Positions 15,301 through 36,040 of a stretch of 64,000 nt of DNA are shown in pieces. Made by a program: the position numbers and the translations under genes. Under the pieces are notes generated by a model. It saw only the letters and a program-made list of their open reading frames with translations. It did no database searches and was not told the origin of the DNA. Each line of letters opens with the position of its first letter. Within the stretch, counting starts at the first letter, position 1. The DNA is taken from positions 1,178,001 to 1,242,000 of the forward strand of contig CDRNST010000233.1 in assembly GCA_977016875.1 (NCBI GenBank), given 5' to 3'. Origin of the DNA: Pavona decussata (lineage: Eukaryota).

Positions 15301-18300
15301 GCAAAAAAAATGTTAACATTTAGTTTTACTTAATACGTTCACAGAAAAACAGTTATTGAACAGTGCATCACGGAAGTTTTAGTAGATTAAAATTAGGAAT
15401 TCATGGTTTATCTTTATGGCGGATGATCTTGATGGCGTGTTTTTGCCTCATGCTAGTCATTAGTTAAGCAACCTTGGTGGGTTATGCCGTTTTTTTCTTA
15501 GATCCGGTTGTTCAAAGGGTGAAAAACTTTATCCAGTGGAAACGTCGCTAGCAAGCGGACAAAATTTACTCCAATTGCCACATTCTGTCCACTGGTAAAA
15601 GCTCTACGCTCTTTGAATAAGTAGGACCAGAAGAGACGACTTAAAAGGCGTCCAAAATAAAAGCTGTCAAAGAAAGAAAATCTTACGGGTAAAAGTATCA
15701 ATTACTGAGTTTAAAACTCGCCCAAAACTAGACAAGATTATGAGAGGATTTTGCTGGTATACCTTAGGGTAAAATTTCGAAATTATGTTAAAGTCAGGTT
15801 TAAAGTTATCACTCGTGAAAGTTCATTTTACTTTGGTGTTAACTGTTGCAAATGACCCTTCGATACTATAAGAAGCTTCAAAATAAATACTATGGTTATA
15901 AGAAAAGCTGTAAGCAAAGAAGTTAACAAAAATAAACAAAACAAAAAAATACATACAGCCATTAGCATCTGTGAAGAATCCAGAAGGAGATCCAGCACAT
16001 GCGCAGTAAGCATTGGCAAAAACAAGTCAGTCAGTTAAAGAATATTATTCTCATTATTATTGGTATTAGAATTTTATCCAAAAAAATACATTCTGTAACA
16101 ATTAAAATTACAAGAAAGGGGGAATAAAGTTGAGTGTACAAAGTAAAGCGACGTACGAGGTGGATATGCAAGGTGCGTTGTTAATAACGCAATGTAGAAC
16201 GCAATGTGATAAATTTGAAAGTCCTGCTTTGTCCCAGGTCGGCAAAGAAAGGGAAAACAGGAGGCGCGGGGCGTGATGGTATTTTTCTCTGCACCATTTC
16301 CAGAAATCCATGCATATTGTTCTGGATTAAGGAGAAACACCTAGGGACAAGGCAGGAGATACACAAAACCTTTCCAAACAAGTAACGACATTTTAGGGTT
16401 ATTATTTCAGCAGAATTCGAGTGCCATTCTTTTCCTTAAGGATATCGCGCAAGGAAAGTGGATCGTGATAAGCGCGCGAAACTAGTCTCGCTGTCTCACT
16501 GGGCGCGCAAAAGACATTACAGAACGTGTTTTTTGTCATCAATGTAAAACTGACCAAACACTATACTCAAACGCGAAAAACTAATTCTGTAATTACAACA
16601 ACATAAAATAAACACAAAATTGCGTGTTCATGAGTCAAGTGATTGAGCCATAACAGGCCTTATTACTCTGGGTTATCAAGAACATCAAGGAGACAAGCTT
16701 ACCGCTTCGTGCGCAGCCTCAATAGCATCCTTGTCGTCTCTCAGTTTCTGATTCATGTCCCTTAAACAAAAATAGTCATTAGCAGGCTGTTTGCAGCCAA
16801 CATAGAATTTTATGGGGAACAACTTTTCAGGCCATATACGTTTAGACGGACTAGTTACAACTCGCTGCACTTCATCCTGGACCTCAGAGAACTTACACGA
16901 GGCAGATGATAAAGGTTCTTAACATTCACTAATTGCTTTTTTTTACCTGAGGATGTCTAGCTGCTTGATGAGGCTCGCTTGTTCCTTTTGCATACCCTGT
17001 GATACCCGCATGGCCGCCCTACAAAGAGAAAGTATCTTCGGTTTAGTGAAAGTTGAAAGCTATAAAGCTACCCTAAGGTATGGACTAATAGCCTTTCTCC
17101 TCCCACGTGATTGCAAGAAAACTGGAGATTAAATTTTATTGTCACGGCTCGCTTCCAGTTTCCATACGACCATTTATACTGTCACCTGTTTCCCGTGTTT
17201 CTCTGTGTAGCAACCACTACAGTTTTTTTATTGCAAGTAATGAAATGGTACCGCCAGATAAACCCTTGTGAATACAGCCGCCTTTTATTTCTCCCTATCC
17301 GGGATGCGATTGGACAAGGGCGATGAGAGACGGGAGGGTATTTGCAAGAAAAGGCAAAACAAACTGGCGAAGACGATGGACGTAAGATATATTTACACCT
17401 ACTATCGTCAATGCTCATTTGATAGAAGAGTTTTTGTAAACAAAAGAGTATGAGAAAATGAGCGCTCTTTTCCAACAAGAAGAAAACCAAAAACGGTTTC
17501 TTTTCACGAATATTTTCGGTGAAAAACCAGGCATTCAATCCAAACAAAAGGTTACTTACAGGACAACAAAAGATAAACTGCGACAGAAAATGATACAAAT
17601 GACAAGCCAAAATAGTGAAAACATAAAACAAATACCCGTTCTGAGGGTCGCTTGAGACGCTTGAACAAGTGTTCTCGTTTTGAAGCTCATCAACAAAATG
17701 TCCACAATGGCATAGCACGGCTTGACAGCCAATCTCAGAAAACGCTACTGGAAGAACAAAGTCTGCTGGTTTAGATGCTAATTCAGCAGAAGTTTGACAG
17801 AGCTCAGTATCATTTAGGCCATCCCGCGAAGTAGATTTAAAGCGGAATACTTCAGGTTCGTCGGGACTTTTCCCGTATGTAGAAGGACGACTAGCGCCCT
17901 GGAGGGGTCCCATTTGTGGAGAGCAGGGCGTATTGACATACTCTTCGACCTCCGCGTCGTTAAAGAGCTCCACGTCATTGGAGACTTGTATCTGTCCAGC
18001 GAGCACGTTCAGGTCGTCTAAAGTATATGCTACTGTCTGGCACTCCTTAGATGTTGCGACATACATATCACCGTCAGGTGATGTCTGGCTTTCTCTACTG
18101 TGATATTCAATGGCGGATTCCAAGTTTGACGTCTGACAGAGTTTTGAAGACGAAACAGTGGTGGCTGTTTGACATGCTTTAGTACCGTAGGTTGGCTTGT
18201 TTCTTTCAAGACTATCTGTGGTCTGGTTGTTGTGTGCAACCGAATCTGCTTTCGCTAATTTCAAGGACAGAGTCGACAAATAATAGTGGTCGTTCATTAG

Positions 18301-21300
18301 GCCAGGATCCGTTTGACATTCTTTGTTGTTGTAGACAAAATACTTACACTGGTGGGCTTGAACCTCAGTTGGTGTCTTAAAGGAACCATCCGCGACAAAC
18401 TTTGGCATTGTCTGGGTTTCTTTAGAGGACACTGCTGGTAACCCAATTTCTGTTTGACACTCTTTGCTCAGGGAGGATATTTCGGTCTCTTTTCCCAGCT
18501 TTGCAATATCTCCAGAGTCGTTATACCACGAAGTCTGACATTGCTTCGATGTAACAAGGAGAAGGTCAGAGTCCAGAATTGTTTGACACTCCTTGCTCTC
18601 ATAGAATATTTCAGTCTCTACTTTTGCCTTCTCAATCTCGTCAGAGGTGTAAGACCAGAAAGAGGTTTGACATGCTTTTGACGTTGCAAACAAAAGATCA
18701 GTGTCCAGGAAGGTTTGGCACTCTTTGCTCTCGTAGGTCTTTTCAGCTTCTTCTGTCAGCTTTGTAATCTCTCCAGAAGTATTGGACCACGAGGAGGGCT
18801 GACATTGAATTGACATTGCAGGAATTAGGTCAAAGTCAAATACTGTTTGACACTCTTTGTTCTCGTGGGAGTTTTCGGCTTCTTCTCTCAGGAATGTAAT
18901 CTCTCCAGAGGTATGGGTCCACGAGGAAGTCGACGGAATAAAGTCAGAGTCAAACAATGTTTGACCCTCTTTGCTTTCGTGGGACATTCCGGCCTCCACT
19001 CCTGTCTTTTTGGTCTCTCCAGAGGCATAAGAAAAGGAAGAGTTCTGATATTCCTTCAACGCCGCAAGAAGAAAATCAGTGTCCAGTAATGTTTGACACT
19101 CTTTGCTTTCGCAGGGTATTTCAGTCTCCACCACAGCCTTTTCGTTCTCTTCAGAATTATGGAACCACGAGAAGGTCTGACATTCTTTTGACGCTACGCG
19201 AAGTAGGTCATTGTCCAGTACCGTTTGACACTCCTTATCAACATAGGAAGTGAACCGGGATGTGGAAATTTTCTTTACAGCAGACTCATCTGCGGCACCA
19301 CGAATGGTCAATATCTCGCACTGCGTTGATGACGTTACAAGTACATTGTGAAGTGATGTTTGGCACTCTTTGTTTGTTAGGGACACCAAGCGAGACGGAC
19401 CATCTTCTGCAGTAGAAGTTCCGCAATCACCGAATTCATGCAGGTTGCTTCCTGTTGTCTGGCATTCCTTGTTGTAAAAGGAAATGTGATTTGCCGATTT
19501 AGTAGTGTTAATCTGGCATTCCTTTGATGATGTCAAAACCAGTTCATAACCAGGTGACGTTTGACAGTCTTTGTCGACATGTTGGCAGTCGTTGATTCGT
19601 GCTTGAACCTCCTCACCACTATCGCCATCTTCGCCTAAAGCAGTCTCCCTCTGCACGATTTTTTCTTCAGAGCGAGGGTTGGGGAGTTTCACCTGGACAC
19701 CCACACTGGCAAAGTCATTGGTTTGCAGCTCTGTCTGGCATTCAATGCTTTGTTGTAGGAATGCTTTTCGGGGAGAACTGACTTCAAGGGTCTCGTTCGT
19801 TTGACATGCAGCATTGACGCTTTTGTATGAAAAGGACGTCTGGCTTCCTTTAGTTTTACACTCTGGTGGGCTGCCACTTCCCTTTAATACATCTACTTGA
19901 CGTTGTTGATCAGTACCCTCCCTGATGACATTACCCGAGTGAAATCTGCCAGCTTTGAATGTGCCAAATCCCTGTTTGCCGTTGTCAGATTCCGCTTTCG
20001 AATAAGAATCAAGTTTCTGCGTTTTGGCTGAGGCCATTGGTCCTTTGTGAGAATTTCCCTCCTCGTCTCGATTTCCGTCCTGGAGCAAATGATGTTGGAG
20101 ACGGTCACTTTTATCAAGATGTGGTTTTCCAAATGGTACCCAGGTTGAGGCCCGCAAATCATCTTGAGTACTGATTTCCACATTTGACCTCTCTTTCTGT
20201 CCTTGAAACGTGAAATAGTTGTTTTTAGAGTAAGTCTGCCTTATTTCACCGGCATTAAGTCCTTCGTAACTGCAGACGACTTCTTCCACCTCCACTTTAC
20301 TTGATCCATTTTTACCATTTGAATCCAATTCCTTGACTTCAACTAAGTTGGCGTCTTTGCTTTGAGTCCCGACTTCAGCAAACATGGGGTCAGTAATGTT
20401 GTCTGCTAAGGCTGTTTTGCCATCTAAACAGTCCGCAGTCTCATCAAGGTAGCTTGAAAACATCGCTTCCGTGGTAGGCAAAGCTCCATCTTCAAACGGA
20501 TTATCGTTGACGTCCAAGGCTACAAAACAGACATCTTCAGTTGCAACATGCCTCTCGGCTGCATCTTGTACTACTCTTAGACTAGTGATATCCGAACCTT
20601 GGTGGTGGCGAAGTGCATTATCCGTCAATGCCAAGGGCTGGAATTGTTCCTCGGGTAGAAGGTCTATTTTTGTCACGTCTTCAAAAGAATCTGCATTTTC
20701 GTTTTCATATGTCTTTTCCGACATATCAAACACTATCTCTACTACTGGAGTCGCTTTGCCAGACAGACTCGTAATTGCACTTGGCTGCTGGATAAAATAT
20801 TGAACTGCTTTTTCGCAAGCAAAGCCTTCTTCGTGAACAGAAGACAATTTGGTTTCACCAACTAAATCCTCAGATTCATCTACGAGGGAAGTGATATTGT
20901 CAGAAACACCACTGTTTCTTTCTACACTTTTTCGCAAACTGGTATGGAGGGTATTGGTCAGTTCTTCTTGAGTGGCATGATCTGTTTTACTGTCTTCATG
21001 AGTAACGTGTTCGGAAATGGGGGAGTCCATTGTAGAATCCTTTGGTTCGTTTTCGTCCAGGAACAAGTCTTCCTTTTTCACGCCTTCATCTGACTGCCAA
21101 AGAGTTGAACTGGTCTCTAGGGTCTCCACTGTAGAAGTCTCATTCTTTTTATGAATGTCCACGTCAAAATTCCCACAGGGTTTAAGGGACGCTGCGGTTT
21201 CTAGGGGTTCAACTGGCAACATCGGAGAGACATAACGTTTACCAGTTATCTCTGGAAAAGAATTGGCACCTCTAGTGTTATGAGTAAGGGCAATGCTTTG

Positions 21301-24300
21301 AGCCACTGGTATTCCTGACAACAATACAGGAGAAACTGTTTCTTCACTCTGGAGTGTGAAATCAGTTGAGCTCGAATCGACATTTGCTTTCTTCTTACCT
21401 CCATTGAGAGGTTGCGCCCTTCTTTGTTCCGTTTCCTTGACGAAGTCTCTCTGATATATTTTTGCTTCATTGGATGGTTCCACATCATCCAAAGATTCTA
21501 ATGCCTTTGCCCAACTTTCTTTAGGTTTGTTTGAGGTCGTCTCTTTCTGTGAATATGGTTCTCTCGTAGGGTTAGGCAGGGCATCAGCTAACTGTAGATG
21601 ATCACCATTTGTAGACGCTTCGCTTGTCTTTGAAAGAACTGCTGCTTGCTTTTTGCGTTCGGGAATACGCCTTTGTCTAGGTACATGGGTGTAACTTCCT
21701 TCCTTTGAAGAAGGTGAATTGGAGAGCTGGGTTACGTTTTTTCTGAAGCGTCGCATATCTGTCTCACTTAGATGGGTTCCAGTGCTTTTGTCGTTCATAT
21801 TATGAGGGCCATCATAGTTCTCATCCGTTGGCTGAAAGTGGGCATCAAGTGCACTTTTTGTCTTTCGCATGGTCCTTCCTACTTCGTCATCTTGGCAACT
21901 CTGATTAAGTTGCTCATGTGTAGTAATGGTGTCAGCTTTCTCCTTTGAGATTACTTCCTGACTGCCACCTTTCTCTTGTTTTTCCTTGAAAACAGGAACT
22001 AAAGAAAAGTAGTTGTCGCTGTCGATGTCACCACTGTTACAGTTGCCGTCGTCCTTGTCCTTGTCATTAAAACGAAGAATTTTCTCGATACTTGGATGTT
22101 TGCTGTCGTCGTCCAAGGAGAGCTGTAGTTCTCGTTCTGCTTTCTTGGTGGAATGCCTCTTAGACTCGTTCCCCTCAACTGCCATCTTACTTTTCTGTAA
22201 TAAGCGTTTTGTAGTCTTTGCCAAACTTTCGTCAGCTGCACCGGAAGACCGTCTCCTTGCATGTGGTTCAGTAGCCGTGCTAGGACGAGGCAAATCACCA
22301 GTTAACTTAGAGTGTAGTTCATTGTGTTTCGGTGATGTTTCAAAAGGACTTTTGCTTTTCATCGTGGGATTCTTTCCCTGTCTTTCGTTCTCGTTGTATT
22401 TTCGTTTGGTCACAGGATTGTACGTTCGTTGCTGTGTAGAACGTGAAGTGGGACGCTGAGAAACGTCTTTCCCGGGACGTCCATTGTCTTTCTCAAGTAG
22501 CTGGCTATCAATAATTCCGTCCTTTGCTTCTGTGTCAGTGCACTCCCCTTTTACTTCATCTTTCACCAAACAAGTATCCTCTCTCACCCGTTTCGCTTTG
22601 AGTCCACGTTTGTCAGTTGTCTGATAACCTTGCCGCTGCTTGTAAGAAACAAACGCCTCTCCGCCTGTAGGTTCCAAAGTTAAAGAGCCATCAACCGTGT
22701 TTTTCATTTTACCTCTGTCGGGAAGGTGTTCAACAGGCCCACGATTCAAATCTTTATGTGGTCGATTCTTCTCTCTCGCCGGCCACCTTGGGTCCGTTGC
22801 TTGAGATATTTTTTCTGCATCTCCCATTTTCAGTTCTGATCCATAAGCGGCGGGAGCCATCGTATCTTTGACTTCCTGCTTCTCATTGTCTTGCAGATTC
22901 TCCTCCAGCCTTTCACCCTCGGAAGGCGATTTACGGCTCGTGTTTGAAGTTACTTCTCTCTTGATTGAACGTATCTTTATAGGAACAACCTTTCCCTGAA
23001 CATTTCCATGCCCAGTAGGTCTTGTCATTGAATCCTCTGGTATCAGTTTCTGCCATGCAGGATAAGAAATATTCTTTACTTCCTCTGACCCATAAAACGG
23101 ACTTTGATCGCTTGGTATCTGTTTAGACAATTGGCCAGACTGCAAGGTTCCCTTTGACCGCCTAATCAGATTACTGCAGGGAATACCATCCAGTTCATCT
23201 TGGCTAGACCGTTGATAGTCAAATGTTGTGTCTCCTGGGGCATTCGGCATTACGTTGACACTTTCATACTCAGTGGACAAATTAATACTGCTGTTCAGTT
23301 CATAATCGAACTCTGCACCGTGTGAATTGCCACGCTTTGAAGGTAAATCGTCACATTTGGCAGCAGGCTTGTTTGTCACTCTCATCTCCGCTTTGGTAGC
23401 TTCAAGGTCATTATAATATTTACTCGGCGTATGATTTCCAGGATAGCCAGCTGAAACTCCTTTGTCCGCTTCGACCCCTGTCGCACCTTGGAGCATCACT
23501 CCCTCTGTGTCCCACTTTCCTTCAGGTTTGCTTCTTTGCTCATCCCTCACCAAAGAAATAGAAGGGGCAGCCGTCAGGGCAAATACAGAATGGCGATCAC
23601 TTCTTCCACCACTATGGTGAAACTGTGACCCTTTCAAAGCATCGTGGTCGGTAGAATCACCATCGGTCCTTCCAACGTAGGGCAAGGCACCTTCGCGCTG
23701 ATATAATGACCTTGATTTTGATTTTATTACCCTGTGCGAATCTTCATTGCGAAACACTCTTATTGCTGGTCCTCCAGAAATCCCAGGCACCACACAAGCC
23801 ATAAGCCCACGATCGCTATCTTGGCCTTCAAACTCAGGTCTCTTCAAAGAATCCCCGTCATTATGTCTGTGTTTCTTATGTCGCTCTGCACGGCCTTCCT
23901 TTGAAGCCATCTTTCGTTTCGTTCTCTTGTCATCTTGTTTGCCAACAAGTGCAAAACACATAAAGCCGCTATCAGCGCTGCTTGTTGATAAATAGTCATC
24001 TTCGATCACATCTGGAACGTAGCCTAACTCCGAAGCTACAGAAGACAAATCTTCGAAACTATCAGCAATCTGGCGTGACGTGCCCTGCGGGTATCCAGAG
24101 ATGACCTCTTGATCACCGTCACGACGCCTGGAGGTCGGACTAATACTTTCATTCCACCGACAATCCTTGCCAGCGAAAAACCGTGCGGTATATCCAAAAT
24201 GCTCCAAAGACCCCTCTGTTTCATTGCGGTATCTGAAACTGCCTTCCGAATCAGCCTCGCTCGAAAATGAGGCCATTGGAAGGCGATCTAATGTCTGTCG

Positions 24301-27011
24301 TTTGTTCGACACGCCGGGTATTTTTTGTAAACACTGATCAATTTTTTTCTCCCTACTGTGCGAACGCTCATCATCTCCTTCGCTCCAAAAGACGGAATCG
24401 TCCTCAAAACAATCATTCCGGATTCCATCAGGACTGTAACGTTGCTCCGAGCTACTGGTATTTTGTGGATCGTCCCTCAAATTGGGAGATGTCGAAGTGC
24501 ACGTCGCAGTTCCAATGTCGTGAAAGGACGTCTCACTTTCACTGCTGAGAATATTTGCGTACTCCAAAAACAATTCAGAAACTTGTCGCCCCATACTCGG
24601 GCTTGGAGGCCAGTTTTCTTCTGTGTAAGCGTCGACGGAAATGATGTCTTTGTTTAACTCGGGGCACGAACTCGAAGCCAAAGATACCGCTCCGTCTTTT
24701 GACAAATCGTCGTTCGAAGCGGACGTGTCCGACGAGGGGTACACATTGACAACGTTGACAAAACGCCGAAACTGGGGATCCAATCGAGAAACATACGACG
24801 TTGGGGACTTGGACATTTGGATTTCTTGAATCTGTTGGGCCCAATGCAAAGGTCACAAGGCAGTTAATCAAACTGTGAATTCCATCTATTCTGTTTTCGC
24901 ATGGCGTGTGTACGGCTGCGTGAGGGATTTACAACGTTTACAATTCCACGCCAATCATCTATCAACCGGTTTTATGGTCTCGTGTTAAGTACGCACAAAC
25001 AGCATACACTGTGCAAACATCGTCAGACAGTTTGATAGGCAGAAGTGTTCATTATTCCAGCAGCAGACAAATACTTAAAATTTTTGAATAAATCTGACGA
25101 CGTTTACTAGCTGAACGGAATTTGCAGAAATTTCTCGACAAACTTACACGAAACGTTTCCGAAAAATTGTTATTTCAATAACGCATTGAAGGCTAACAGT
25201 TTGTCAAATTTTACCGTCGCAAGTTATGTCGAGCTCAGCAATGATCTTATGTTTTTTGTCAGTCTGCAGCCTTCAAGACGCCCACAAATGGTTCAAATGA
25301 CGTGGGGGCCGACAAGATTATTTTTCAAAACAATACACCAATTATACGTGAAACATAATTCGCTCAGAAAGCTAATTTCGGCTCCACTCGAACATAAACA
25401 AGACAAAACAATTATTAACTCCTCAGGTAGTTTTTCTTGTTATGAAACTCAAATAGCAAAAACACTCCATCTTTGCTGCTTATACAAGTCCCATTAGCTT
25501 TGAGTTGCGAAATAATGTTTAATTGCAAAGATTAAATTCTGTTTGTAAATCTTTTTCGTTCATTCGGAAGCAATTGGTTGTCCTAGTAATTCAGTTCAAT
25601 GACCTTTTTCACAGCGAATTTTCGCGAAACGATTTCCTGAATAATCCATCAAATTTTTCATTATAAAAATCACGAGAATTCGCTTCAAATAAAAAGAAAG
25701 CACATTAGTTGTAGTCGCAAATGGAAAGAGTTTAAGTTGGACAGACATAAAAATCGAATTATAAAACGCGACATGTCAAATGCCTTATCCCTGATTAGTG
25801 AACGATAATGAAGCTGGAACCTTATACCCTTGAGCAGTGCATACTTTTATAGTCTAATAACTTTGCACGAGACAGTTTCTAAATTTAGTTCAAGCTTTGT
25901 GTATCTTTACGTGCAAAATTAAGCAATGCAGTGTAGACGTCAAGGAAAAGGAAAACACTCCACAACCACATCTGTTCAACACTATAACGCGCAAACAAAC
26001 CTATTTCCCCTACTTCGCTTGGCAAGTAGCAATTATTCACCATAGTTTTTCATGTCAAAGTCTCGATAAGAAACATTCAGTGATAAAAATTTGCATTTTT
26101 AATATGCAAACTCACGCCGTGTTGACACAGAAAAACACACATAAGAGTAGTAAATGGCAAGACAGTTGTGTTTTGTCATCTCATGATGTGGGGTTAGAAA
26201 TTGATGTCAACTCAAACTCATTCTTTTAGTCCTTTGAAGGTTGCATGTCTCAGGATATGGGAATGAGCGATACCAGAAGGCGGAAAAAGCTTGTATTTGG
26301 ATTATTATTGTACGCACGACGGGAAGGTCCCATTCACACCAAAACATTTTCAAAAGTTTGGATTTCCATTGAAAAACAAGTAAACGTTCTGCTTCCACAT
26401 GACCATTTTTAGACCGTTTTTTCCGCCCACACAAGGACGGCACGAACATGAAACCTATACAAGCGATAAACCGCACTTCTGTATACGTAATATCAGTCGA
26501 CAAGTCGTTCTTTTCGCTGTCCACACAGTCTGCATTGTTACGCTGTCCAGGCGGATGCGTTTTGGGAAGACTACACGCTGAAAAACGGCCGTTTTATTGA
26601 AGTTGGTGTTTTCAATGCGCATTCGTATGGACGGAAATGGAAACGCAAAGAAAAGTTTCCGGTTTCAAACGCATCCGTGTGGACGGGGCCTCTGAAGTCT
26701 TCAAAGAACAAATCACATGACTGCAGTCAGTTTGCTCCATACCAGGCTAAGGATAAGGTAAGGGAGATTCTGACTGGTGCCGTATGGCGATATTCCACTC
26801 CATTCACTTCGCGTCAAATGGGGGATCGGGATAAAGATTGCCTGCGGTACGGGACGAAATAAACTTATATAATCACACCAACGACCAACTGAGAAAGCTG
26901 CTCTCCTCGCCAACCCTCTCCACTCCACTGACACACAAATTCACACGCTTCCCGCTTATAATAATAATTCTACTACTAGTAATACTACTACTACTACTAC
27001 TAAAAATAATA

Positions 27012-27049
<38 letters not shown>

Positions 27050-30000
27050 AATCTTACTAAAGATTTTTATACGCATTTTAAGATGAAAATTAGCGATAAG
27101 AAAATCCGAAGTTTCAGAGACTCCATGTCGTTACTATCAATGAATATGCAAGGTAAGCTCATACAATGACGACATGGGAGTAGGATTTTGAAACGAAACG
27201 TAACATTTTGCTTTGGTTCTCGTGCCACTTTCGCAACCAATAAGAATAAAACTTGAAAGCAACCGTGAATATTTCGCACGCGTTTTCCCGCGCCTGGCGC
27301 CCCTCTTACATATCAAATTCTAATTGGTTCATTGCGCTGTTTAGGTCTGTTTTGATTAACCAGAGTAATTACTTTGGTTTTGGTTCCACGACACTCAACA
27401 ACATGCAAGCGAGCAACATCTTCGCATTTCCTTTCGGTGGAGCGCCAAAGTAAAAGAGATTGCGGTGGTCTAAACCTACCGTGCCCTCTCTTTCTTTTCC
27501 ATCGCCGTTTGAGCTTGAAGTTGGTTCACGTAACTTTTCGTGTCTTCTAAGGAGCTGACGGAAGAACTCAACATCTCTTCCAGGTACACCGTTTTCTGAG
27601 TGGATCATAAAATTAAAACTGTGTCAGTAGCGTTGCCATTGTAAGTAGCTCAACTCTACAACGAACAGATAAAGTCGTCCCTCTTCCTATGGAAAGTTAC
27701 AGGAGCATGCACCTTTTAACGAAGAATTTTTAGTAAAATTCGGCGAGAATGGTTATTTGGGAGAACTGCTGTCACCTTTTTAAGATTCTTGTGCTAGAAA
27801 ATATTCCGGAAGGGAGGCTTTGGAAGGGATTCTTATTGTCGAGCCCTTTTTTCGATTCGCGCTGGCTGCTTTAGCAAATTTCCTACGTGGCCTTTTGACC
27901 CCTGCTCCCAATCCCAGAAAGAAAAGTTGAAACAGTGCTTTTCCATGTTACCATATAATAGTCCGAGGCAACATTTGCTAAGGGGAGCACTGTAATTGGC
28001 TCTTGTTGTAGTGGCTCCCCTGCCTGAATGTCTTCTGTGTAGCTATTTCAAGGGGAGCTCAAAAAATAAATAAATAAATAAATAAATAAACAGCTGGCAC
28101 TACTTTGGTCTACTTTTTTTTGCCGTTAGGGAACTTTGCGACACTTACCGACTACAAGCATAACATTGTTCCCACATACTAAAATAATTTTTAAAAATAC
28201 AATTCTGTATTTTAATAGAAAACTATCCCGTGATAAAGACCCATTTAGTGTACGAGAAGAGTTTAAATCAGTACCCAAAGCGCAAAAATTCCTGGCGTAG
28301 TCCCTTTAAAAGTGTTCACATGTTTGTACTGCACGCTGTGAGCGAAGCACGTACGATGCCTTTTGACATCTCCTAGAAATCCATAAATCTCAAGTCATCT
28401 TTTGCCGCTCTTGTACTAACCTGATAAAGTTTTTCGTTTTCACTCTTTATGTCTTGTTCCGTGTAATTTTTCTTTTGAATTTCTTCTTCCAGCTAAAAAC
28501 AAACAAATCAACAAACAGAATAACTAGTGACATTATAACTGCTCTGCATTTTTCCATTTTATATGGTCGCATTTAAAGTTTCAGCTTTGCTGTAGTTAGT
28601 TTAAAAGCCGCTTTGTTCTGCGGGGGTCATGCGGGGGCAAATACATGACTTTATTTAGTGGGCCACAGCGTTACTAAGCCTCAGCGAGCCCAGTTTAGCT
28701 GGCTATTTTATGCCGGGCAATAGAAAACAAAGTTGTTCTACAGCTCTATAACAACTATTGTAATATTATGTAATTCACTGACCGACTTCTGCTTTTGTAA
28801 AAGATGTTGCATCTCTAGTTCCTTGCTTTCCAGTTCTCGGATCAGCTCATCTTTCAAAGCTTTTTCTCGTTTTATTTGCTGAAAACAACACACAAGCACT
28901 CTGTTAGTTAACGCTTTCATTTCCAAGACAAACTAAACTCAGAAATTATTCAAGAAAAATCTCAAATTCAATTCTCTAATATTTAAACACTGACAAACAG
29001 ATGGCACCATAGGGAAGCACATATCCCAGTGGGGTTAGCACTCAGTGATAGGTCAAGCCTGAGAATTTTCTCCAAAAAAGATCTCTAGTCTGTAATGAGG
29101 TATATAGACCTAGACACACAATGTGTATGCATTTATACCAACCCTCCTGGAATATCCAGGAGTTCCCCAGTTACAGAACAAATTTCCTCGTCTCCTGTAT
29201 GACTCCGGTACCAAATCTTCCAGATGAAAGCCATTTTTAATGCTTTCTCTATAATCAACTAAAACTTCAACATCAAATTTTCTTACAATTATCCTCCAAA
29301 TTTTGGTTTTCCTTTTATTTAGGTTACATTTCTTGGGCACACCTTTTACCCAATCTGTTACAACGCTAATACGAAAACCCTTGGAAATGGGGTACTAGAT
29401 TTTAAGGGGAGGGGATGGGATGGGTTGGCTGGCCATTTTGGAGGGCTGGTGCGTACAAGGAGAGGTGGCCGGGTTGGTGATGGGGACTGGCCCTAAAGAA
29501 AAAAAAAACAGAATTCAGACCACCACAGGTTATCTCTTATCTACAGGAATCTCTGACTATGGAAAGCCAGGCCTGATATGTGGGCAGGGAAATGTCCCTC
29601 CCCCACCCCCAAGAAATTAAGGGACTTGCAGTATTACAACCTCCCTGATGGGATGCCAGCTCTTTGCAGCATTATCCCACAGAATATGAAAAGCCTGGAC
29701 TCTGAAGCCCAGAGAGTGATCAGGATCAAATTTCTCCTCACAATATCACATGATCCAACTCAGTCAGTGCATGAGACAAATGGAAAAGATCAACTAGGTA
29801 AAAGTTTTACGCAAAGTTTCATGCAATAATGATGGGATTAAATACTGAGATCCTGCATTGTCTTCAATTCATACAGCAACACATTGTGATCAAGTTAAAA
29901 ATACATTGAAATTTTGAGTTGTCATATTTTCAAACCACAATGACCAACACCTTTCATGACAAGAAATTTCACTTCATTAATTCTTTCTCTTCAACCAAAG

Positions 30001-33000
30001 GTCATGATTACTTTATGAGCATTATTAAATCAGGGATGCTGAACCCATTTATGCAGTCAAATAAGTGAAACATTAGATAAGTGCCAGAGGGCTATTTGGT
30101 TCAAAAACTATTTAATTAATATTTAATTAACCTTTATAAGTGTCACACCTCATTACATTAAATTATTATAATTTTTAACCTTTTATAATTGTCATACCTC
30201 ATTATGAATTCTCTCTTTCTCAGTTCTAATTTGTTGCTCCATCTCCTCATATAACCTTTGGACTTCTTTGTCATGAGAGTTTGATTTACTGCGATAAAAC
30301 AAACAAGAAATATGAAAGACTTATAAATGCTGAGAAGAGTTTAGGACACAAATGTGGAATTCTAGGAGCATAATTAATTAAGTAATTAGTTTTAACTTCA
30401 GCACAATTTTGATCCAAAAACATACAAATGACAATATAATAACCCTCTAACAGGCTGTATGTATAACTGGAATTAGCCTGGGTACAACTGCCCACACACA
30501 TCAAGCAAATCGGAATTAAGTTGAGGAAAGCAGGCTACTGCATACAGGATACCTAGCCAGGATAAATCAGCATTTACTATTCTTGAGAAATAATAATTGT
30601 TAAAGAAACCTCTTACTGAATTAATTATCTGATGAATCTTGCCAACATACAAATTCATGATATAACTTGTATTTTGATGTTCTGTGCCTCAAAAATTATC
30701 ACTGATTACAAGGAACTGTGATTCTAACTCCATGAAATATTGTATCTATTTGGATGAATTAGGCTTTTGCTCAAATTCTAACATCTAAAACTTAACACAT
30801 GTTTAATTTAAATGTTTCATTGATTTCAAACCTCAAAATACCTCCTCTTTCTCCCCACTCACATTCTAAATTTGAATAATTTCAAGATATTATAATAAAA
30901 CTGTTATAAACCACTTTTCAATATTTTTCTGTTTCCAAAATGTATGCCATGACAAAAGAAATGCATAAGTTGACCCTATTTTGAGAACAAATGGACAATC
31001 TCCCATTACATAGACAAAACTATAATATTGCTTTTCACAAAACAACTTAAAATTTAAATATTTTGGCTGTAAAAGAAGAAGCTTGCTCAAACAATAAACA
31101 GAACTAATAGTTTGTCTTCTATAAATAATTATAATTCATTAGTAGATAAGCAGGCTATTAGTAAAAGTGACCAAACTGAACCAGGATACTTGATCATTAA
31201 GAAGGAAAAGGAGAGGCTTATAATGTTATATAAAATGTATAATGATCTGGTAGACTTGGCTCTAAAAGCTACCTCCTGCCAGCAGGGCACCAAAGCCACC
31301 AGCACTCTGAAAGTACCTGCAATTTATTTTCCTTTTTCCGTAAGACAACAAGGGAAGGGAACACCTTACCACTGGATGTAATTGAGTCGGATTCTGTTTC
31401 TCCTTTCAAAGTTAAACTGGAAAAATTGACCTTAATTTACTTATTATTCTTAACTTATTGTAATGACTGCTGACCACATGTGAAAATCTTCTGTACAGAA
31501 GAAGACATGTATATGGAAAGAAAAAGAAAGAAAGAATGTGAAGTATTTTACATACCTTTTCAGGGCACTCTCGAGTTGCTCGGATTCTACTTTAGCTCGT
31601 CGAATCTCGCCCGAAACTTTGCCTAAAAACTCCTCGAATTTCTGCAATCCGCGCACGTCGTTTTTCCGAAGGGCTTCCCATAAGTCGCGCAGCTGGTCTT
31701 TGGTCAGAGATCTAGCACAGGAGAATTACCGGTAATAATCTTAAGTGCAATCGCTTAAAAGGATTAAAGATCTTGTTGATAAGATTAATACCCCAGCAAA
31801 TTGCCCCGTTTAAAAAGTCTTGAATTAAAATCACCAAGGGGCGATTTTTTTTCCTGCCAGGTGTGAAGGATTGTTGTTTGTCTACACCTCGCTGCCTGAT
31901 CGCTGTCAGCACATTTACATCGCGAATATGAAATGCGCTAATTAAATATAAAGGAAAATAATAATTCGACAGAGCTTGCCAGAAATACTTTGTCGTTGCG
32001 TTTAGACGTTCAAAGGGTTTAACGGAAAAAGATTATTGCCTTTTTTTCTTCAAACAATATGACAAAAGTCCAGCTACTTTGTTTGGTCTGATGTGCAGTC
32101 GAATAATAAATGTTTACAATACGGACTTGAATAATTATAACCAAGATTTTTCCGCTTTTTTGTTAACGATGATTTTATAAGTACGCTAAATACCTTTGAG
32201 TGCAATAAAAGCAAAGAATAATGTATTACAGATCCCATCCCTAAAAAAAGTAGTGTAATATGATATCGAACGTCCGATCGTCTGTTCGAAAATGGATTCA
32301 AAATCTCGCTGAATTTTTTGCGGGAAAATACAGATGTAAACAAACATTCACTTCCTAACCCCGGGGGATTTGGTAGAAAGCGACAGCAGCACTTAACCAG
32401 TTTCATAACAGCTGAAGAGAATTTCCACAACCAAGAACGTCAGAAAACGCGGTTAAAAGATATAAGTGCCCGTAATCATAACAATAATAACCCTCAGCTG
32501 TTATTGTAAGCCAGCCAAGGCGCCAAATTTGATATGCCTAAGTACAAACATGACACCATATTAAAATCAAAGCAGGATCGGTGTGGGCTTAAAAAGCACA
32601 ATCCACAAAACCGATAGCGGATCAAATTGTTACCCCGTGAAAATGTCTTCTCCGACGCTTTCCACAATTTCCCGAAACAGCGCATCTTCCGAAGGGTGAT
32701 TTGGTGATGCTAGGCCAGTCTCCAAACTTTCGAAGATATCCAGCTCCGCGTGTCCATTGTCCTTCGTGAATCCATCGCTCAAATCATGTTTCGACGAGTC
32801 AAATTCTGTCGAGCCGTTACCTTCGTCCAGAAACGTCCCAAATCCTTCGACAAATTCATCCATAGTTAATTGACCGTTTTTATCGATGTCTAGCTTATCG
32901 AAGATAAAATCAAGTTGCTCAAAATTCAAGTTTAAGTCTTCGGCGACCCGCTCCAAATCTGCCTTGGTGATGTATCCCTTCCCTTCAGGGTCGCACAAGA

Positions 33001-33319
33001 AAAACAGCTCTCGACCAGGGTCGCTGATTGACGTGATTTCCTCCAGTTCGCTTTGGCTTTCATCGTCCGAGCGTATGCCCAGGAAAAGCCCAAAACCTGC
33101 TGTGAACTCCTCTAAAGTCAAGTAGCCATTCTGATCTTCATCGAGTTCATTGAAAGTCTGCTTAACTTGCGCTGCATCCAGAGGCAGGCCAAGTTCCGCG
33201 ATCACACTCTGTAATTCATTCTTGGTAATATAACCTTTGCCGTCGTGGTCACATAAGTTGTAGAGCTCTATCGCTCGCTCCTTTAAAACCGTTTTCAGCT
33301 GATCTGGGTCTTCGGCCAT
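5304..33319 (-). CDS. CRACR2A: Large Rab GTPase gene, CRACR2A/EFCAB4B (Rab46)-like or RASEF (Rab45)-like: 4 EF-hands, coiled coil, acidic linker, Rab domain, C-terminal CC; ~893 aa
   Basis: GT-AG, phase-consistent exons: 33319-32634, 31711-31556, 30288-30198, 28878-28783, 28492-28421, 27595-27480, 17018-16947, 16760-16703, (15968-15957), 14792-14745, 12933-12788, 11694-11599, 10758-10613, 9926-9813, 9334-9183, 8438-8279, 7802-7721, 7240-7126, 6487-6377, 6232-6156, 5391-5304. Family motifs: [92 protein letters not shown]2A versus RASEF orthology is not resolved without a tree. Confidence 0.88.
6156..6232 (-). CDS. CRACR2A: Rab domain exon: G5
   Basis: [25 protein letters not shown]; GTAAGT donor. 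Confidence 0.9.
6268..6333. repeat. (AATC)n(AGTC)n compound microsatellite
   Basis: Direct reading. Confidence 0.9.
6377..6487 (-). CDS. CRACR2A: Rab domain exon: G4 (SKVD)
   Basis: [37 protein letters not shown]. Confidence 0.9.
6625..6830 (+). mobile_element. tRNA-derived SINE
   Basis: A-box-like GCAGTGGTGAG, B-box GGTTCGATTCC, then a non-tRNA body (TGTGGGCTGAGTTTGT...TTTTCTCCGGGTACTCC). Confidence 0.7.
7126..7240 (-). CDS. CRACR2A: Rab domain exon: switch II / RabF
   Basis: [38 protein letters not shown]. Confidence 0.92.
7721..7802 (-). CDS. CRACR2A: Rab domain exon: G3
   Basis: [28 protein letters not shown]. Confidence 0.92.
8279..8438 (-). CDS. CRACR2A: Rab domain exon: P-loop and switch I
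   Basis: [25 protein letters not shown]...FTATI; tandem CAGCAG acceptor. Confidence 0.92.
9183..9334 (-). CDS. CRACR2A: Large Rab gene pre-Rab linker exon
   Basis: [12 protein letters not shown]...[21 protein letters not shown], resembling the SSPRGQPVGK motif of CRACR2A; GTAAGT donor. Confidence 0.85.
9813..9926 (-). CDS. CRACR2A: Large Rab gene acidic linker exon
   Basis: [21 protein letters not shown]...GAAA; GTGAGT donor; phase 1-1. Confidence 0.8.
10613..10758 (-). CDS. CRACR2A: Large Rab gene linker exon
   Basis: [18 protein letters not shown]...CVQPT; phase 2 to 1. Confidence 0.8.
10907..11025. repeat. Imperfect inverted repeat (~54-bp arms), MITE-like
   Basis: GGAGCAGATAGTTGGGTCGGAAGGAAGTCAAAACGGGTAAGTTTACAAGAACGA versus reverse complement GGGGCAGATAGTTTGGTCAGGAAAAAGTCAAAATGTCTAAGTTTATGAGAACGA. 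Confidence 0.7.
11599..11694 (-). CDS. CRACR2A: Large Rab gene linker exon (symmetric, 96 nt)
   Basis: [31 protein letters not shown]; GTAAGT donor; phase 2-2. Confidence 0.75.
12788..12933 (-). CDS. CRACR2A: Large Rab gene linker exon
   Basis: [48 protein letters not shown]; phase 0 to 2. Confidence 0.8.
13040..13560 (+). repeat. Degenerate ~105-110 bp satellite-like tandem repeat (~5 units)
   Basis: GAGTCTGTGGATGAAATCCT...AAGTGTGA...GCAGTA.TTTCCTGTGGT..TGTTTATTA..CTGTACAAGGTGGTTCTAAC recurs at ~13040, 13153, 13261, 13366, 13457. Confidence 0.8.
14640..14704. repeat. Perfect palindrome, 32-bp arms around a single C
   Basis: TTTTTAGGTAATAAATCGGTTTAGAGCATTTA-C-TAAATGCTCTAAACCGATTTATTACCTAAAAA. 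Confidence 0.92.
14745..14792 (-). CDS. CRACR2A: Large Rab gene 48-nt linker exon
   Basis: [16 protein letters not shown]; CAG acceptor, GTAAGA donor; phase 0-0. Confidence 0.75.
15957..15968 (-). CDS. Candidate 12-nt microexon (MLMA) of the large Rab gene
   Basis: TTCTTCACAG|ATGCTAATGGCT|GTATGT; frame-preserving in a phase-0 intron. Confidence 0.5.
16703..16760 (-). CDS. CRACR2A: Large Rab gene exon 8
   Basis: [19 protein letters not shown]; GTAAGC donor. Confidence 0.88.
16947..17018 (-). CDS. CRACR2A: Large Rab gene exon 7
   Basis: [23 protein letters not shown](R); strong TTCTCTTTGTAG acceptor; phase 2-2. Confidence 0.88.
17636..24831 (-). CDS. Giant (~7.2 kb) alternative coding exon in intron 6 of the large Rab gene: ~2400-aa disordered region with KECQT motif array
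   Basis: Part of uninterrupted ORF 17182..24849 (2555 codons). Phase-2 donor GG|GTATTT at 17636 matches the phase-2 acceptor of exon 7. 5' end is either a CAG acceptor (exon start 24831, phase 0) or the first ATG at 24816. No transposase or RT motifs. Confidence 0.75.
18400..19260 (-). repeat. Coding tandem repeat, ~132 bp / 44 aa, ~7 units
   Basis: GTTTG(A/G)C anchors at 19223, 19091, 18959, 18845, 18713, 18581, 18452 (spacings 132, 132, 114, 132, 132, 129). Confidence 0.85.
26960..27050. repeat. (TAA)/(CTA)/(ATG)n trinucleotide microsatellite
   Basis: Direct reading; the source of the spurious poly-M/poly-I ORFs. Confidence 0.9.
27480..27595 (-). CDS. CRACR2A: Large Rab gene exon 6 (coiled coil)
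   Basis: [38 protein letters not shown](R); phase 0 to 2; joins exon 7 as a continuous helix. Different frame from the ORF-track call 27369..27608. Confidence 0.82.
28421..28492 (-). CDS. CRACR2A: Large Rab gene exon 5 (coiled coil)
   Basis: [24 protein letters not shown]; phase 0-0; GTTAGT donor. Confidence 0.85.
28783..28878 (-). CDS. CRACR2A: Large Rab gene exon 4 (coiled coil)
   Basis: [32 protein letters not shown]; TTTCAG acceptor, GTCAGT donor. Confidence 0.85.
30198..30288 (-). CDS. CRACR2A: Large Rab gene exon 3 (coiled coil)
   Basis: [30 protein letters not shown]; CAG acceptor, GTATGA donor. Confidence 0.88.
31556..31711 (-). CDS. CRACR2A: Large Rab gene exon 2
   Basis: TAG acceptor; [18 protein letters not shown]...LESALK; donor GTATGT; phases match neighbours. 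Confidence 0.85.
32634..33319 (-). CDS. CRACR2A: Large Rab gene exon 1: two EF-hand pairs
   Basis: ATG at 33319. Loops [48 protein letters not shown]. Phase-2 donor GG|GTAACA. Confidence 0.9.
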
Positions 33320-36040
33320 TGTTTAAACCACATCGACAAAATCCAAGCCATACAAATGCGCAGTCTGGTGTTAATATGCTGAAAAATCCCTTTGCGCTTG
33401 AACCAACAACGGCCGTCTCAATATCGTCCCAACATTTTGTCTCAGCGCAATACTCGACGATAATAAATTAACCCGTCCGGTTTGGAAGTTCTATTAAACT
33501 GAATAATTATGCAAAGTCGTTTCAATTTCTTTTTACAGTGTTGACTTTCGACTCATCACAATTTTACCAATATGCATGCATGCCCTAACAGTCAGCTACC
33601 TAGATACGTGCCAAAAGGTACTCTCTAGGGAGGGAGGGGGGCGCAATATCAACCAGCCCGGGGAATCTTCCCGAAGCCGTGACGTTCTAAATCAAACATC
33701 TTAAAAGAAGCATGGATTACCGAATCAACAATCTAAGGAATGCTAATCCCTACCAGAAAAATAAAATATTGCTATTAATTGCATTTGTGTTTAATGGCGC
33801 AGCACAGTGCTATGTTTTATTCATATCGGTGTGTTAATGTTGCTGTGAGCGAAAATCACTTCAGCCGGACATGAAACAACCGTGAATGTTTTGTTTTCCG
33901 TAGTTCATTTTAGCCGCCAACAGGCGAAAAAAAAATGTGATTAGCTTTATTGTAGTACTTTTTGACGGTCTTGTAAAATCGAATATAGTTCAGTTCTCCA
34001 TTTTCACGTCAAAAATAGTTACTAACCCACTCAAAATATCGGCCTATATTGGCTTTGCCTAGCATTGTTACGTAAGGGACGAGAAAAACGTCATCCATTA
34101 AAAAATCAGTTTTAATGTAAATAGCCAGTTCAGCAGGTTTAATAATTTATATAAATATCATGTAGCAAATAAACTATTAGTGTGTGAGTGTGTGTGTCTC
34201 GAGTCCAGTTGCAGAATATGAAGCTAAGGGGGTTAATTAAAATGAAATCATATTACTTGCCCCGGTTTATGCCTCGTTAGTTATATCAGCTTATATCGGA
34301 TCGTTTTCTCGGTCGCGACCCATATTTCTCCTCTAAAATTAACCCGCTTAACATATGCTCACGATCCCAACCGTTTCCGTGAGAAAAATAACAGAGTTTG
34401 TCCTTGAACAAAAAAATAAATTGAGTGACATCTTGGCATCTTGGATGACATTTAAACTCAACAAGAAATAAAACGACTGCATTTTAAGTAGAGAGAAAAC
34501 AATGTGGTTCCCTTGGTTTTAAATGACCTATGTCAATAATTTAAAACACACACACGATTCGCTATTGTTTTTTTTTTTTTTTTTACAAAACCGGATAGAA
34601 GAGGGAAAGGTCATTGTCTCCTTGATTTTTTTTTCCGCCAAAAAATACTATCACGTACGTACGTCAGCGCGTATGACGTGCGCGTGGGCATGTGTACCGC
34701 GGACATTATTTTACTTATTTTTCAGATTAATGCCAACAGTACTAGTATCCAGTAAGTTGTTTTTTTCTTTACAAAAATCGGGGTTTTTTTCCTGCATATA
34801 AAAGGATCGGAATTATGTTCCCCTGCTCCCAAAAACCTTCCTTGCTATACCAAACAGCAAACCAAACCAAACCAAACCAAACCGAGAGGTTTTTGCTTTG
34901 GTAGAAATGTTTGCCACGAGAAAGGTGTCTATTAGCCGAAGACAAGAGAGGATGAGGTAAAAACAGTGGAAGGGAATAAAACAACAGAGCATAAACTTTC
35001 AGTCCTTAAGATTGCTGTAGGGCAAATGAATCGCGAACTTTAATATGATTAGCGAAGATATTTTCTTGGTCATGAATAGATATTGGCAATCAACAATAAA
35101 TCTAAGAGCATGAAATGCAAGCAAACAAAAAGCTTTCTGGACCGTGCCTCCTCCCGTCTTGCTACTGAGCGCACGTTCTGCGCATCTCGAGATGGACGGT
35201 GCGTACAAATTGAAAGGTATTTTTGCGCCGTGTATGACTATGCGAGATGAGAAGAATCTTAGTAAGTGTTTTTGAAATCTGAAAAGAAAACTGGGGGTAA
35301 CTATAGGGATTTTTCAGGGATAACCAAGCTTCAACTGAGAAAAAAAAATTCATACATTGTTTTGTAATTTTTAACAGCATTATTGTCGCTTAATTATCTC
35401 TGTAAAATGCAAAGTTACCCCCGATTTTCTTTTCGGGTTTAAAAAACCCTTCCTAAGATCTTCTTTGCCCACATAGTTATAAACTGCACTACCCTGGGTA
35501 CCAGAGGTTATTTTTTTTCGCGAGACAACGGGCGCCAACGGGCCCGGCTTCTGGAGCCAGGGTAAACTGGGCAAAACTACATTTCTATTAGGGGCACCGT
35601 CCTGATCAATATCGATTTGTCTCTTTACAATATACTGCTGGGGGTTTATATCAGTTGTAAGTTACAGATTAATGTATAGTTCGGGAAACACAAGGCTGAA
35701 AGGAGGATAAGGCGGGGGAACCAACCGATCAGATTTCAGACTAAAGACCAACAGTCTTTCACATTAACGTGCAGGGTGCCGAAAAAATTAAGTCACCCCT
35801 TCTTGTTACTACCACGTCGTGGATACTTAAACACTCAAAATTCCTAATATAATATATTTCAATCAGCCCCAAAGTGCCAATTAGGCATTCCGTCTCCAAG
35901 GACTGATCCAGCCCTTTGGCGGGAGCAGTGCAATCTGAAACGTCCCCTTCAAAACCGCATTACAACCTCATTCAGAGTCCCTGGCTGCATTTCAGGGCTT
36001 AGCTGATAAGAATTTTCCTGAACCAAATTGGCCCGAAAAA

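Follow-up and report, generated by a model that had tools for sequence, protein, structure and literature searches.

In a 64,000-nucleotide (nt) stretch of DNA from the coral Pavona decussata (GCA_977016875.1, contig CDRNST010000233.1, positions 1,178,001-1,242,000, forward strand; hereafter the window), whose sequence contains no N, one giant exon on the minus strand ends in an array of 24 short motifs embedded in a chain that is predicted to be disordered. The explanation that we favour, with a probability of roughly 0.58, is that these motifs are docking sites for LC8/DYNLL and that they are encoded in an alternative first coding exon of a coral gene whose sequence places it in the Rab45/Rab46 (RASEF/CRACR2A) family. 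Exons of this gene were mapped one by one, using natural RefSeq and Logan orthologues as search queries and no joined exons of the window. The array is single-copy in the P. decussata genome. The positions of all features are collected in Table 1.

An array of about 25 motifs with 11 exact KECQT copies had been described in the original prediction for this DNA. When every match to [KR]x[CTSG]Q[TI] or xxCQT was counted as a site, we obtained 24, running from the K of KGSQT, at precisely the start coordinate that had been predicted (19851), to the T of ELCQT (17791). The last ∼740 amino acids (aa) of the exon contain 19 CQT triplets, and all 11 KECQT copies were recovered there, as was each variant that had been named: KETQT, KACQT (twice), KQCQT, KDCQT, KLCQT, KEGQT, RESQT, KGSQT, AACQT, IECQT, ELCQT, KECQI, VGVQV, SSTQC and IGCQA, the last of which, together with a cluster of cysteines, extends the region to 17701. 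By anchor type, the 24 sites comprise 19 CQT, one TQT and a remainder of SQT, GQT or CQI, and 19 of the 32 cysteines of the region sit in CQT. The sites span 683 aa, with Q-to-Q spacings of 12-81 aa, the commonest being 16 aa (six times). Chance would yield a mean of 0.20 CQT (maximum 3) and 0.001 KECQT in the 759-aa region, as judged from 20,000 composition-preserving shuffles, and CQT is absent from the remaining 1,639 aa of the exon. The copies use varied synonymous codons (AAA/AAG, GAG/GAA, TGT/TGC, CAA/CAG, ACN), which indicates that the repetition is kept at the protein level and not only by recent copying of DNA. The Tyr and Ser residues said to precede many motifs were also found: counting the Q of each motif as position 0, Tyr is frequent at −5/−6 and Ser or Asn at −4.

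Part of the array is built from tandem 44-aa units, and Tandem Repeats Finder (TRF) reported a 132-nt period at 18653-18922. In each unit, two sites lie at a distance of 16 aa and are accompanied by an LDxDLL stretch and a Trp; the other sites of the array are dispersed. Within the unit, the first site is followed by [LFVI][LF]D.D[LF][LI] and the second by the Trp at +4/+5. The stretch after the first site may be a second motif class, with a possible resemblance to DLL or acidic di-leucine motifs. Close to the end of the exon lies the sequence GCQA[VM]LC.CG, in which the alignment columns C730, Q731, C735 and C737 (alignment A1) are invariant, and which could be a candidate metal site or acylation site.

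Conservation of the array was assessed in an alignment of 14 sequences, i.e., with 13 coral orthologues aligned. Identity across these orthologues was 66% for the motif 5-mers versus 31% for the rest of the region, a difference that was matched by 0 of 5,000 permutations. Per-position identity peaked at Q0 (0.79) and T+1 (0.77), with flanks at 0.25-0.35, and the invariant columns of alignment A1 are mostly motif Q, T, K or C. The ratio of nonsynonymous to synonymous substitution rates (dN/dS), measured against one relative at dS 0.23, was 0.19 in the motif codons as opposed to 0.55 elsewhere in the array; the N-terminus of the exon had 0.46 and its middle 0.65 (range 0.65-0.98, almost neutral). 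The motifs are thus preferentially conserved among orthologues, a point on which the original prediction had staked its case. At least 12 dispersed sites keep their position in nearly all 13 aligned orthologues; the tandem 44-aa stretch aligns in 6 of the 13, and the sites at exon aa 1910-2096 are gapped in 7. At about 35% overall identity, each orthologue contains 9-26 CQT (the maximum of 26 being found in P0010/P0012) and 5-19 KxCQT. The frame stays open over 7.2 kb in about 30 coral clusters with identities down to 29%, and the donor ..G/GTAT, which is read through as GY, is kept in every species, with the orthologous open reading frames (ORFs) diverging right after it. Together, the conservation of the motifs, their low dN/dS, the kept donor and the disorder detailed below are characteristic of short linear motifs that function within a disordered region.

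These data also bear on the notion that the array has no function and reflects a tandem-repeat expansion in a fast-evolving, possibly untranslated stretch. Such a notion could draw on the 132-nt repeat, on the almost neutral evolution of the exon middle and on sequencing-run contigs that cover the exon without splice joints. It does not account for a frame and a donor that persist across about 30 clusters, for at least 12 non-tandem sites that hold their positions, for purifying selection that is stronger on motif codons than on their surroundings, or for synonymous codons that differ among copies. We therefore regard it as scarcely credible.

As to distribution, word-indexed searches returned the same ∼31 clusters whether the array or the N-terminal 400 aa of the exon served as query, and those that carry a name are all stony corals. 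A profile search of 1.84 billion representatives yielded only 11 coral orthologues or fragments and no homology to any known LC8 client, and no such sites are present in the sea-anemone orthologues of the gene. Within the reach of these searches, the array was found only in stony corals.

The exon itself lies in an open frame (17185..24849) and is bordered by an AG acceptor (24833-24832) and a GG/GTATTT donor. It is entered in phase 0 and left with 2 nt of a codon, and from the Met at 24816 it encodes about 2,393 aa. None of the five pieces into which it was divided for scanning contained a Pfam family. AlphaFold2 (AF2), supplied with a 13-sequence alignment, assigned the array a mean predicted local distance difference test (pLDDT) of 29.5 without any fold, in agreement with the disordered linkers that had been proposed. 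For the N-terminal 420 aa the pLDDT was 36.9, indicating disorder except for one hairpin at aa 338-356. The whole giant exon is accordingly best described as predicted disorder. A PDB sequence search with a 128-aa piece of the array gave nothing but a chance match (E = 1.3), and the top score of an ESM Atlas search with the N-terminal 395 aa (0.82) was at noise level. The N-terminal 400 aa (23557-24816, minus strand), though predicted to be disordered, show the strongest conservation within the exon (50-59% identity) and display invariant motif islands as well as the hairpin GLMACVV.GISGGPA.RVFR.

The sites were compared with published qualitative rules for LC8 binding (PMC6607443). According to these, −4 should be polar, −3 should have a large side chain and is often K/R, −2 should not be a bulky aromatic residue, −1 and +1 take mid-sized residues that are hydrophobic or form hydrogen bonds, 0 is Q, and +2 is preferably P/D/E and should not be hydrophobic. 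In a logo of 516 CQT sites from 32 orthologues, −4 is occupied by S (60%), N (21%) or D (10%), adding up to 91%, −3 by K (79%) and −2 by E (65%). Q0 and T+1 are the most conserved positions, and −1 is C, S or T. The rules at −4, −3, −2, −1, 0 and +1 are thus followed, and 16 sites of the array pass the complete set including +2, while 8 fail solely at +2; in the other 1,639 aa of the exon one site passes. With its low pLDDT and lack of Pfam domains the region is also disordered, as LC8 motifs are expected to be, and with 24 sites in 683 aa of one disordered chain, joined by short linkers, it has the layout of a multivalent LC8 client of the ASCIZ, KANK1 or Nup159 type.

A close model for these sites is found in the coral itself. 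The LC8 sites of coral dynein intermediate chain (IC) read VLYSKETQTQ, VLYNKETQTQ and VLYNKEIQTQ, and their pattern Y-[S/N]-K-E-x-Q-T recurs in the array, for instance at FYNKECQT and TYESKECQT, the difference between FYNKECQT-like sites and the IC site being essentially a T-to-C change. Dynein IC has one site with Thr or Ile at −1, whereas the array has 24 sites with Cys or Ser. The IC exons were located by way of PF11540, which scored below the cut-off in the genome and yet pointed to them. They occur in three copies with similar intron flanks (L006, L007, L008; G000:C180, C194, C541), of which the LC8 sites are YSKETQT, YNKEIQT and YNKETQT and which also carry the Tctex site; these copies may represent paralogues or haplotypes left uncollapsed.

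A Cys at −1 need not prevent binding to LC8. The SAO-1 site MKSVECQTE has been crystallised in LC8 (PDB 7Y8W), with a dissociation constant (Kd) of 0.5 μM, and LC8Pred scores human CQT sites highly, for instance RDRECQTE of the axonemal dynein IC DNAI1. In addition, SQT anchors in Bassoon and KIBRA are validated LC8 binders, and the MTCL1 site VKDMACQT is an LC8 binder as predicted by AlphaFold. The likeness to SAO-1, which binds Caenorhabditis elegans DLC-1 as a β-strand in the groove, comprises the E-C-Q-T core, in which Glu is at −2, and a Ser at −4. Unlike the coral protein, SAO-1 has a single CQT site beside a VAT site, carries Val and not Lys at −3, and is an unrelated GYF-domain protein.

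The prospective partner is highly conserved: coral LC8 (L001) is 93% identical to DYNLL2, with residues 33-82 being identical, and its specificity should therefore be the characterised one. The genome contains two intronless LC8/DYNLL genes in tandem, 1.6 kb apart (G000:C318:1535109-1535360, L002, and 1536744-1536995, L001), and, on C1132 and C176, two additional partial matches that resemble LC8, of which that on C176 has an internal TAG. When the complex of two LC8 chains and one 42-aa repeat unit was predicted, the score was 0.56, compared to 0.30 for the best of three controls; the runs agreed in at least 62% of contacts, and the partner pLDDT was at least 46. In this type of prediction, 51 of 78 solved complexes pass the mark, as do 2 of 108 mismatched pairs; at scores of 0.60 or lower it is passed by 5 of the 78 solved complexes and by all 4 passing mismatches (of 180). 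The result counts as weak support. The motifs look as LC8-type as had been proposed, with binding at the level of a prediction, and we consider it reasonably probable that the array sites bind LC8.

The second part of our explanation concerns the 5′ end of the array isoform. RefSeq models that include the giant exon exist for Montipora foliosa, Montipora capricornis, Acropora muricata, Acropora palmata, Acropora digitifera, Orbicella faveolata and Stylophora pistillata; truncated ones are available for Acropora millepora, and the shorter Stylophora models likewise start further inside the exon. In the four coral genera concerned, none of the exon-containing RefSeq models reaches upstream, and where they are full-length their first residue is the Met homologous to 24816. 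These models lack EF-hands and a long coiled coil, and where several isoforms are modelled they continue into the Rab domain. P0043, named 'EFCAB4B-like isoform X8', was considered as an EF-hand isoform and rejected, being a truncated model that starts inside the giant exon. The Orbicella annotation assigns the EF-hand unit to a gene of its own, which encodes 415 aa with the domains EF-hand and EFCAB4A_helical and ends 2.6 kb upstream; in-frame stops are located 14-16 codons ahead of the Orbicella ATG. The ∼330 nt upstream of the ATG are more strongly conserved between the window and Orbicella than most of the coding exon and contain two inverted CCAAT boxes (GATTGG, CATTGG). From its sequence, this block (24817-25150) is likely to be an internal promoter of the array isoform. 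The starts of the RefSeq models inside the exon, the Orbicella stops and the promoter-like block together argue that the giant exon is most likely an alternative first coding exon with its own promoter.

The canonical products of the gene are built differently. Upstream of the giant exon and on the same strand, an EF-hand-pair frame is followed by five coiled-coil exons, mapped by tblastn with Orbicella L005, the last of which measures 116 nt (27595-27480). When spliced to position 17018, this 116-nt exon gives the in-frame junction ...KKERAR/AAMRVSEG, which is present in the spliced coral contigs P0071 and P0073. The Logan contigs with exactly this junction, from other corals and 3.3-4.8 kb in length, encode EF-hand + EFCAB4A_helical + Ras proteins of 826-846 aa from which the giant exon is skipped, and RefSeq proteins of sea anemones (Nematostella EFCAB4B, an Actinia RASEF homologue) have the same architecture. 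These spliced contigs, in which the upstream EF-hand pair and coiled coil are joined to the Rab domain, show that a canonical Rab45/46-type isoform exists separately and skips the giant exon; for P. decussata we infer the corresponding EF-hand/coiled-coil-to-Rab junction from its sequence. Read-through of the 116-nt exon leads at once to CGG TAG and hence to a short EF-hand/coiled-coil product, similar to CRACR2A-c or CRACR2B.

The original prediction had presented the gene as a dynein-adaptor Rab. That holds for its RASEF/Rab45-like Rab domain and its KKKCCK end, but probably not for the isoform with the array. An EF-hand pair that binds the dynein light intermediate chain and a long coiled coil are not combined with the array in the RefSeq models, where about 45 aa of coiled coil follow, and this isoform is therefore probably not the dynein-activating one. 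Most likely, the array isoform replaces, rather than accompanies, the adaptor module of EF-hands and long coiled coil.

Several observations weigh against the explanation as a whole. On the LC8 side, eight sites, including the first of each 44-aa unit, have a hydrophobic residue (V/F/L/I/M) at +2, which LC8 disfavours, and the strict TQT anchor (K-x-T-Q-T) occurs at 1 of the 24 sites, KETQT at 18409-18423. In K.xQT sites, moreover, the residue at −1 is C in 410, S in 73 and T in 8 cases, although LC8 prefers Thr; this scarcity of Thr hints at selection for Cys itself, and thus possibly at another partner or a chemical role. The weakly supportive complex prediction described above is the sole one for LC8 with a repeat unit. 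On the gene-structure side, the 5′ end rests on RefSeq models of other corals and on sequence conservation, and since the giant exon agrees in phase with the 116-nt exon, it could also serve as an internal cassette. Of 19 sequencing runs retrieved, none is on record as RNA. Splice joints are absent over 19000-24999 from the contigs of four runs (X1, X6, X8, X15), the kind of which was guessed; these contigs are fragmented and colinear with the genome through 24831 and beyond 24999, and a 'loose end' at 24996 corresponds to reference positions 24997-25026. The Logan proteins with the exon all read through the donor, and they are thus genomic or unspliced and no proof of an RNA.

The composition at −1 is an argument for a role of KxCQT that depends on Cys and not on LC8, be it reversible oxidation or disulfide formation, S-acylation, metal binding or recognition by a coral-specific reader. 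The preference for Cys over Thr, the best LC8 anchor, the 19 of 32 cysteines that lie in CQT, the separate conserved Cys cluster after the array and the weak complex prediction would all suit such a role. Conservation, however, is highest at Q0 and T+1 and not at the Cys, and Cys and Ser exchange freely at orthologous sites. The S/N/D-K-x sequence at −4 to −2 is the LC8 pattern, as in the coral dynein IC site, and ECQT occupies the LC8 groove in a crystal. To our knowledge, there is no other class of motif that K-E-C-Q-T would fit. A non-LC8 role is in our judgement unlikely, if clearly worth bearing in mind, and LC8 docking is preferred.

If the giant exon and the 116-nt exon were alternative internal cassettes, with never more than one of them in a transcript, the array would lie inside the EF-hand/coiled-coil/Rab adaptor. 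The AG acceptor, which opens the frame in phase 0, and the phases identical to those of the 116-nt exon are what such a cassette would need. The exon-containing RefSeq models speak against it, since they fail to extend upstream in four genera and start at the inner Met when full-length, and so do the separate 415-aa EF-hand gene of Orbicella with the stops 14-16 codons before the Met, the promoter-like conservation of the 330 nt upstream with their CCAAT boxes, and the EF-hand-to-Rab mRNA contigs, all of which skip the giant exon. We consider a cassette improbable and retain the alternative first exon.

If the array is indeed an LC8-docking region encoded by a first exon, it could work as follows. 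Its sites would imitate the LC8 site of coral dynein IC, with Cys, or sometimes Ser, in place of Thr at −1. By use of the giant exon, the EF-hand pair and ∼300 aa of coiled coil would be swapped for a disordered arm of ∼2,400 aa, the last third of which is the array, spliced to the ∼45-aa coiled coil, an acidic/basic linker and a geranylgeranylated Rab domain. LC8 dimers would bind the same site on two chains, giving a parallel, in-register ladder, and this zipping would make up for the long coiled coil as a means of dimerisation. A disordered stretch of some 700 aa would also become a stiff rod, tens of nanometres long, separating the membrane-anchored Rab from ∼1,650 aa of further disorder with conserved N-terminal motifs. 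Such a ladder is suggested by analogy with other LC8 clients, and buffering of LC8 would be a variant of the same reading. The idea that Cys at −1 adds redox sensitivity, which came with the original prediction, is speculation. A specific form of it strikes us as quite doubtful: the Cys found at nearly every −1 position, which is buried in the LC8 groove, would have been selected for redox gating, and oxidation, glutathionylation or disulfides at ∼20 cysteines, caused for example by reactive oxygen from the symbionts in heat stress, would release LC8 and collapse the rigid tether anchored by the Rab. If true, stony corals would possess a redox switch for membrane traffic and for the buffering of LC8 that is not known from any other animal.

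Two known systems resemble the array in combining long disorder, many LC8-type sites and short linkers. ASCIZ/ATMIN has 11 LC8 sites in human and 7 in Drosophila, and for regions of this type LC8 dimers are proposed or shown to form a duplex ladder or rod (PMC10046861). Linker L2 of KANK1 carries at least 15 weak LC8 sites over 600 aa and forms rods of 35-50 nm (bioRxiv 10.1101/2025.07.16.665182), so that ASCIZ, which the original prediction had cited as highly multivalent, no longer marks the upper bound of multivalency. The coral array has no homology to either protein, has more sites (24, and up to 26 CQT in relatives) that are closer to one consensus, uses a CQT instead of a TQT anchor and is fused to a prenylated Rab; in the coral, binding is a prediction.

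Among the Rab proteins, Rab45/RASEF and Rab46/CRACR2A belong to the same family as the coral gene, and corals and sea anemones both have the isoform in which EF-hands, coiled coil and Rab are joined. CRACR2A and Rab45 owe their activation of dynein-dynactin to the EF-hand pair and the long coiled coil (PMC6504896). Unlike these two proteins, the array isoform most likely has no EF-hand pair and only ∼45 aa of coiled coil, and activation of dynein by the known route is therefore not to be expected of it. In mammals, a link between Rab45 and LC8 is provided by the effector SHIP164/BLTP3B, which binds DYNLL1/2 via a short motif in its disordered tail (PMC9067936); there a single LC8 site is located on a separate effector, whereas the corals have ∼24 sites on the Rab polypeptide itself. 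The long and short isoforms of mouse Rab44 differ in their N-terminal part and in localisation while keeping the Rab domain (PMC8016136), but they have neither a giant disordered exon nor a motif array. A search of the literature for this protein or for any large Rab with LC8 motifs found no paper. The claim that such a large-Rab isoform was unknown holds to that extent, although RefSeq already contains models of it as 'uncharacterized protein'.

Should the sites bind LC8, the coral protein would surpass all known LC8 clients in multivalency and regularity, and none before it would have been built on CQT anchors or fused directly to a Rab GTPase. This protein would then represent a lineage-specific redesign of a large Rab, in which a Ca2+-sensing dynein-adaptor module was traded for an LC8-zippered arm and the membrane anchor was kept. 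The array would provide a natural system in which to examine how the rigidity of a ladder depends on linker length and anchor chemistry, and coral cell biology would gain a candidate tether or LC8 buffer limited to stony corals. If LC8 is not bound, the array would be a clean case of a strongly conserved orphan motif array in need of a reader.

Table 1. Features of the Rab45/Rab46-family gene in the window, with positions counted from the first nucleotide of the window.
Feature	Position	Strand	Basis or remarks
Giant exon	17636..24831	−	7,196 nt; ORF with acceptor and donor reading
Probable start codon of the array isoform	24814..24816	−	Homologous Met is the first residue of almost every full-length orthologue, the full-length RefSeq isoforms among them
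Array of 24 LC8-like sites, consensus [S/N/D]-K-[E]-C-Q-T	17791..19851	−	Site count, conservation, dN/dS, rule check
Tandem 44-aa units, about six	18451..19242	−	TRF period 132
Cys/His cluster GCQA[VM]LC.CG	17701..17730	−	30 aa before the exon end; several columns invariant
Conserved non-coding block, candidate promoter and 5′ untranslated region	24817..25150	−	Alignment of the window, L010, L011 and Orbicella L005
EF-hand-pair open frame, N-terminus of the canonical isoform	32633..33322	−	Pfam EF-hand_7, E = 1.3e-26
116-nt exon, last coiled-coil exon of the EF-hand isoform	27480..27595	−	Same entry and exit phase as the giant exon
Exon directly downstream of the giant exon	16947..17018	−	tblastn of RefSeq orthologues; splice sites read
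Rab GTPase exons	5307..8447	−	P-loop 8447-8277; DTAGQE 7806-7720; 7242-7126
Rab GTPase exons, remainder	about 6487-6390; 6235-6155; 5393-5307	−	ETSAK in 6235-6155; tail 5393-5307 ends KKKCCK

Downstream of the giant exon, the remaining exons were placed by tblastn of coral RefSeq orthologues. The orthologous Rab domain has its best PDB match in RASEF (2p5s, 1.5e-50; next match 1e-43) and scores 2.4e-53 with Pfam Ras, and together with the C-terminal Cys prenylation motif in which the gene of the window ends, this marks the product as a large Rab of this subfamily. The first two downstream exons (17018-16947 and 16765-16703) jointly encode the ∼45-aa coiled coil, which is common to both isoforms. 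Between the coiled coil and the Rab domain lies an acidic/basic linker of several exons, two of them alternative. These are the small exons at 14718-14804 and 11604-11657 (minus strand), which are present in only some RefSeq isoforms of other corals and thus appear to be alternative cassettes.

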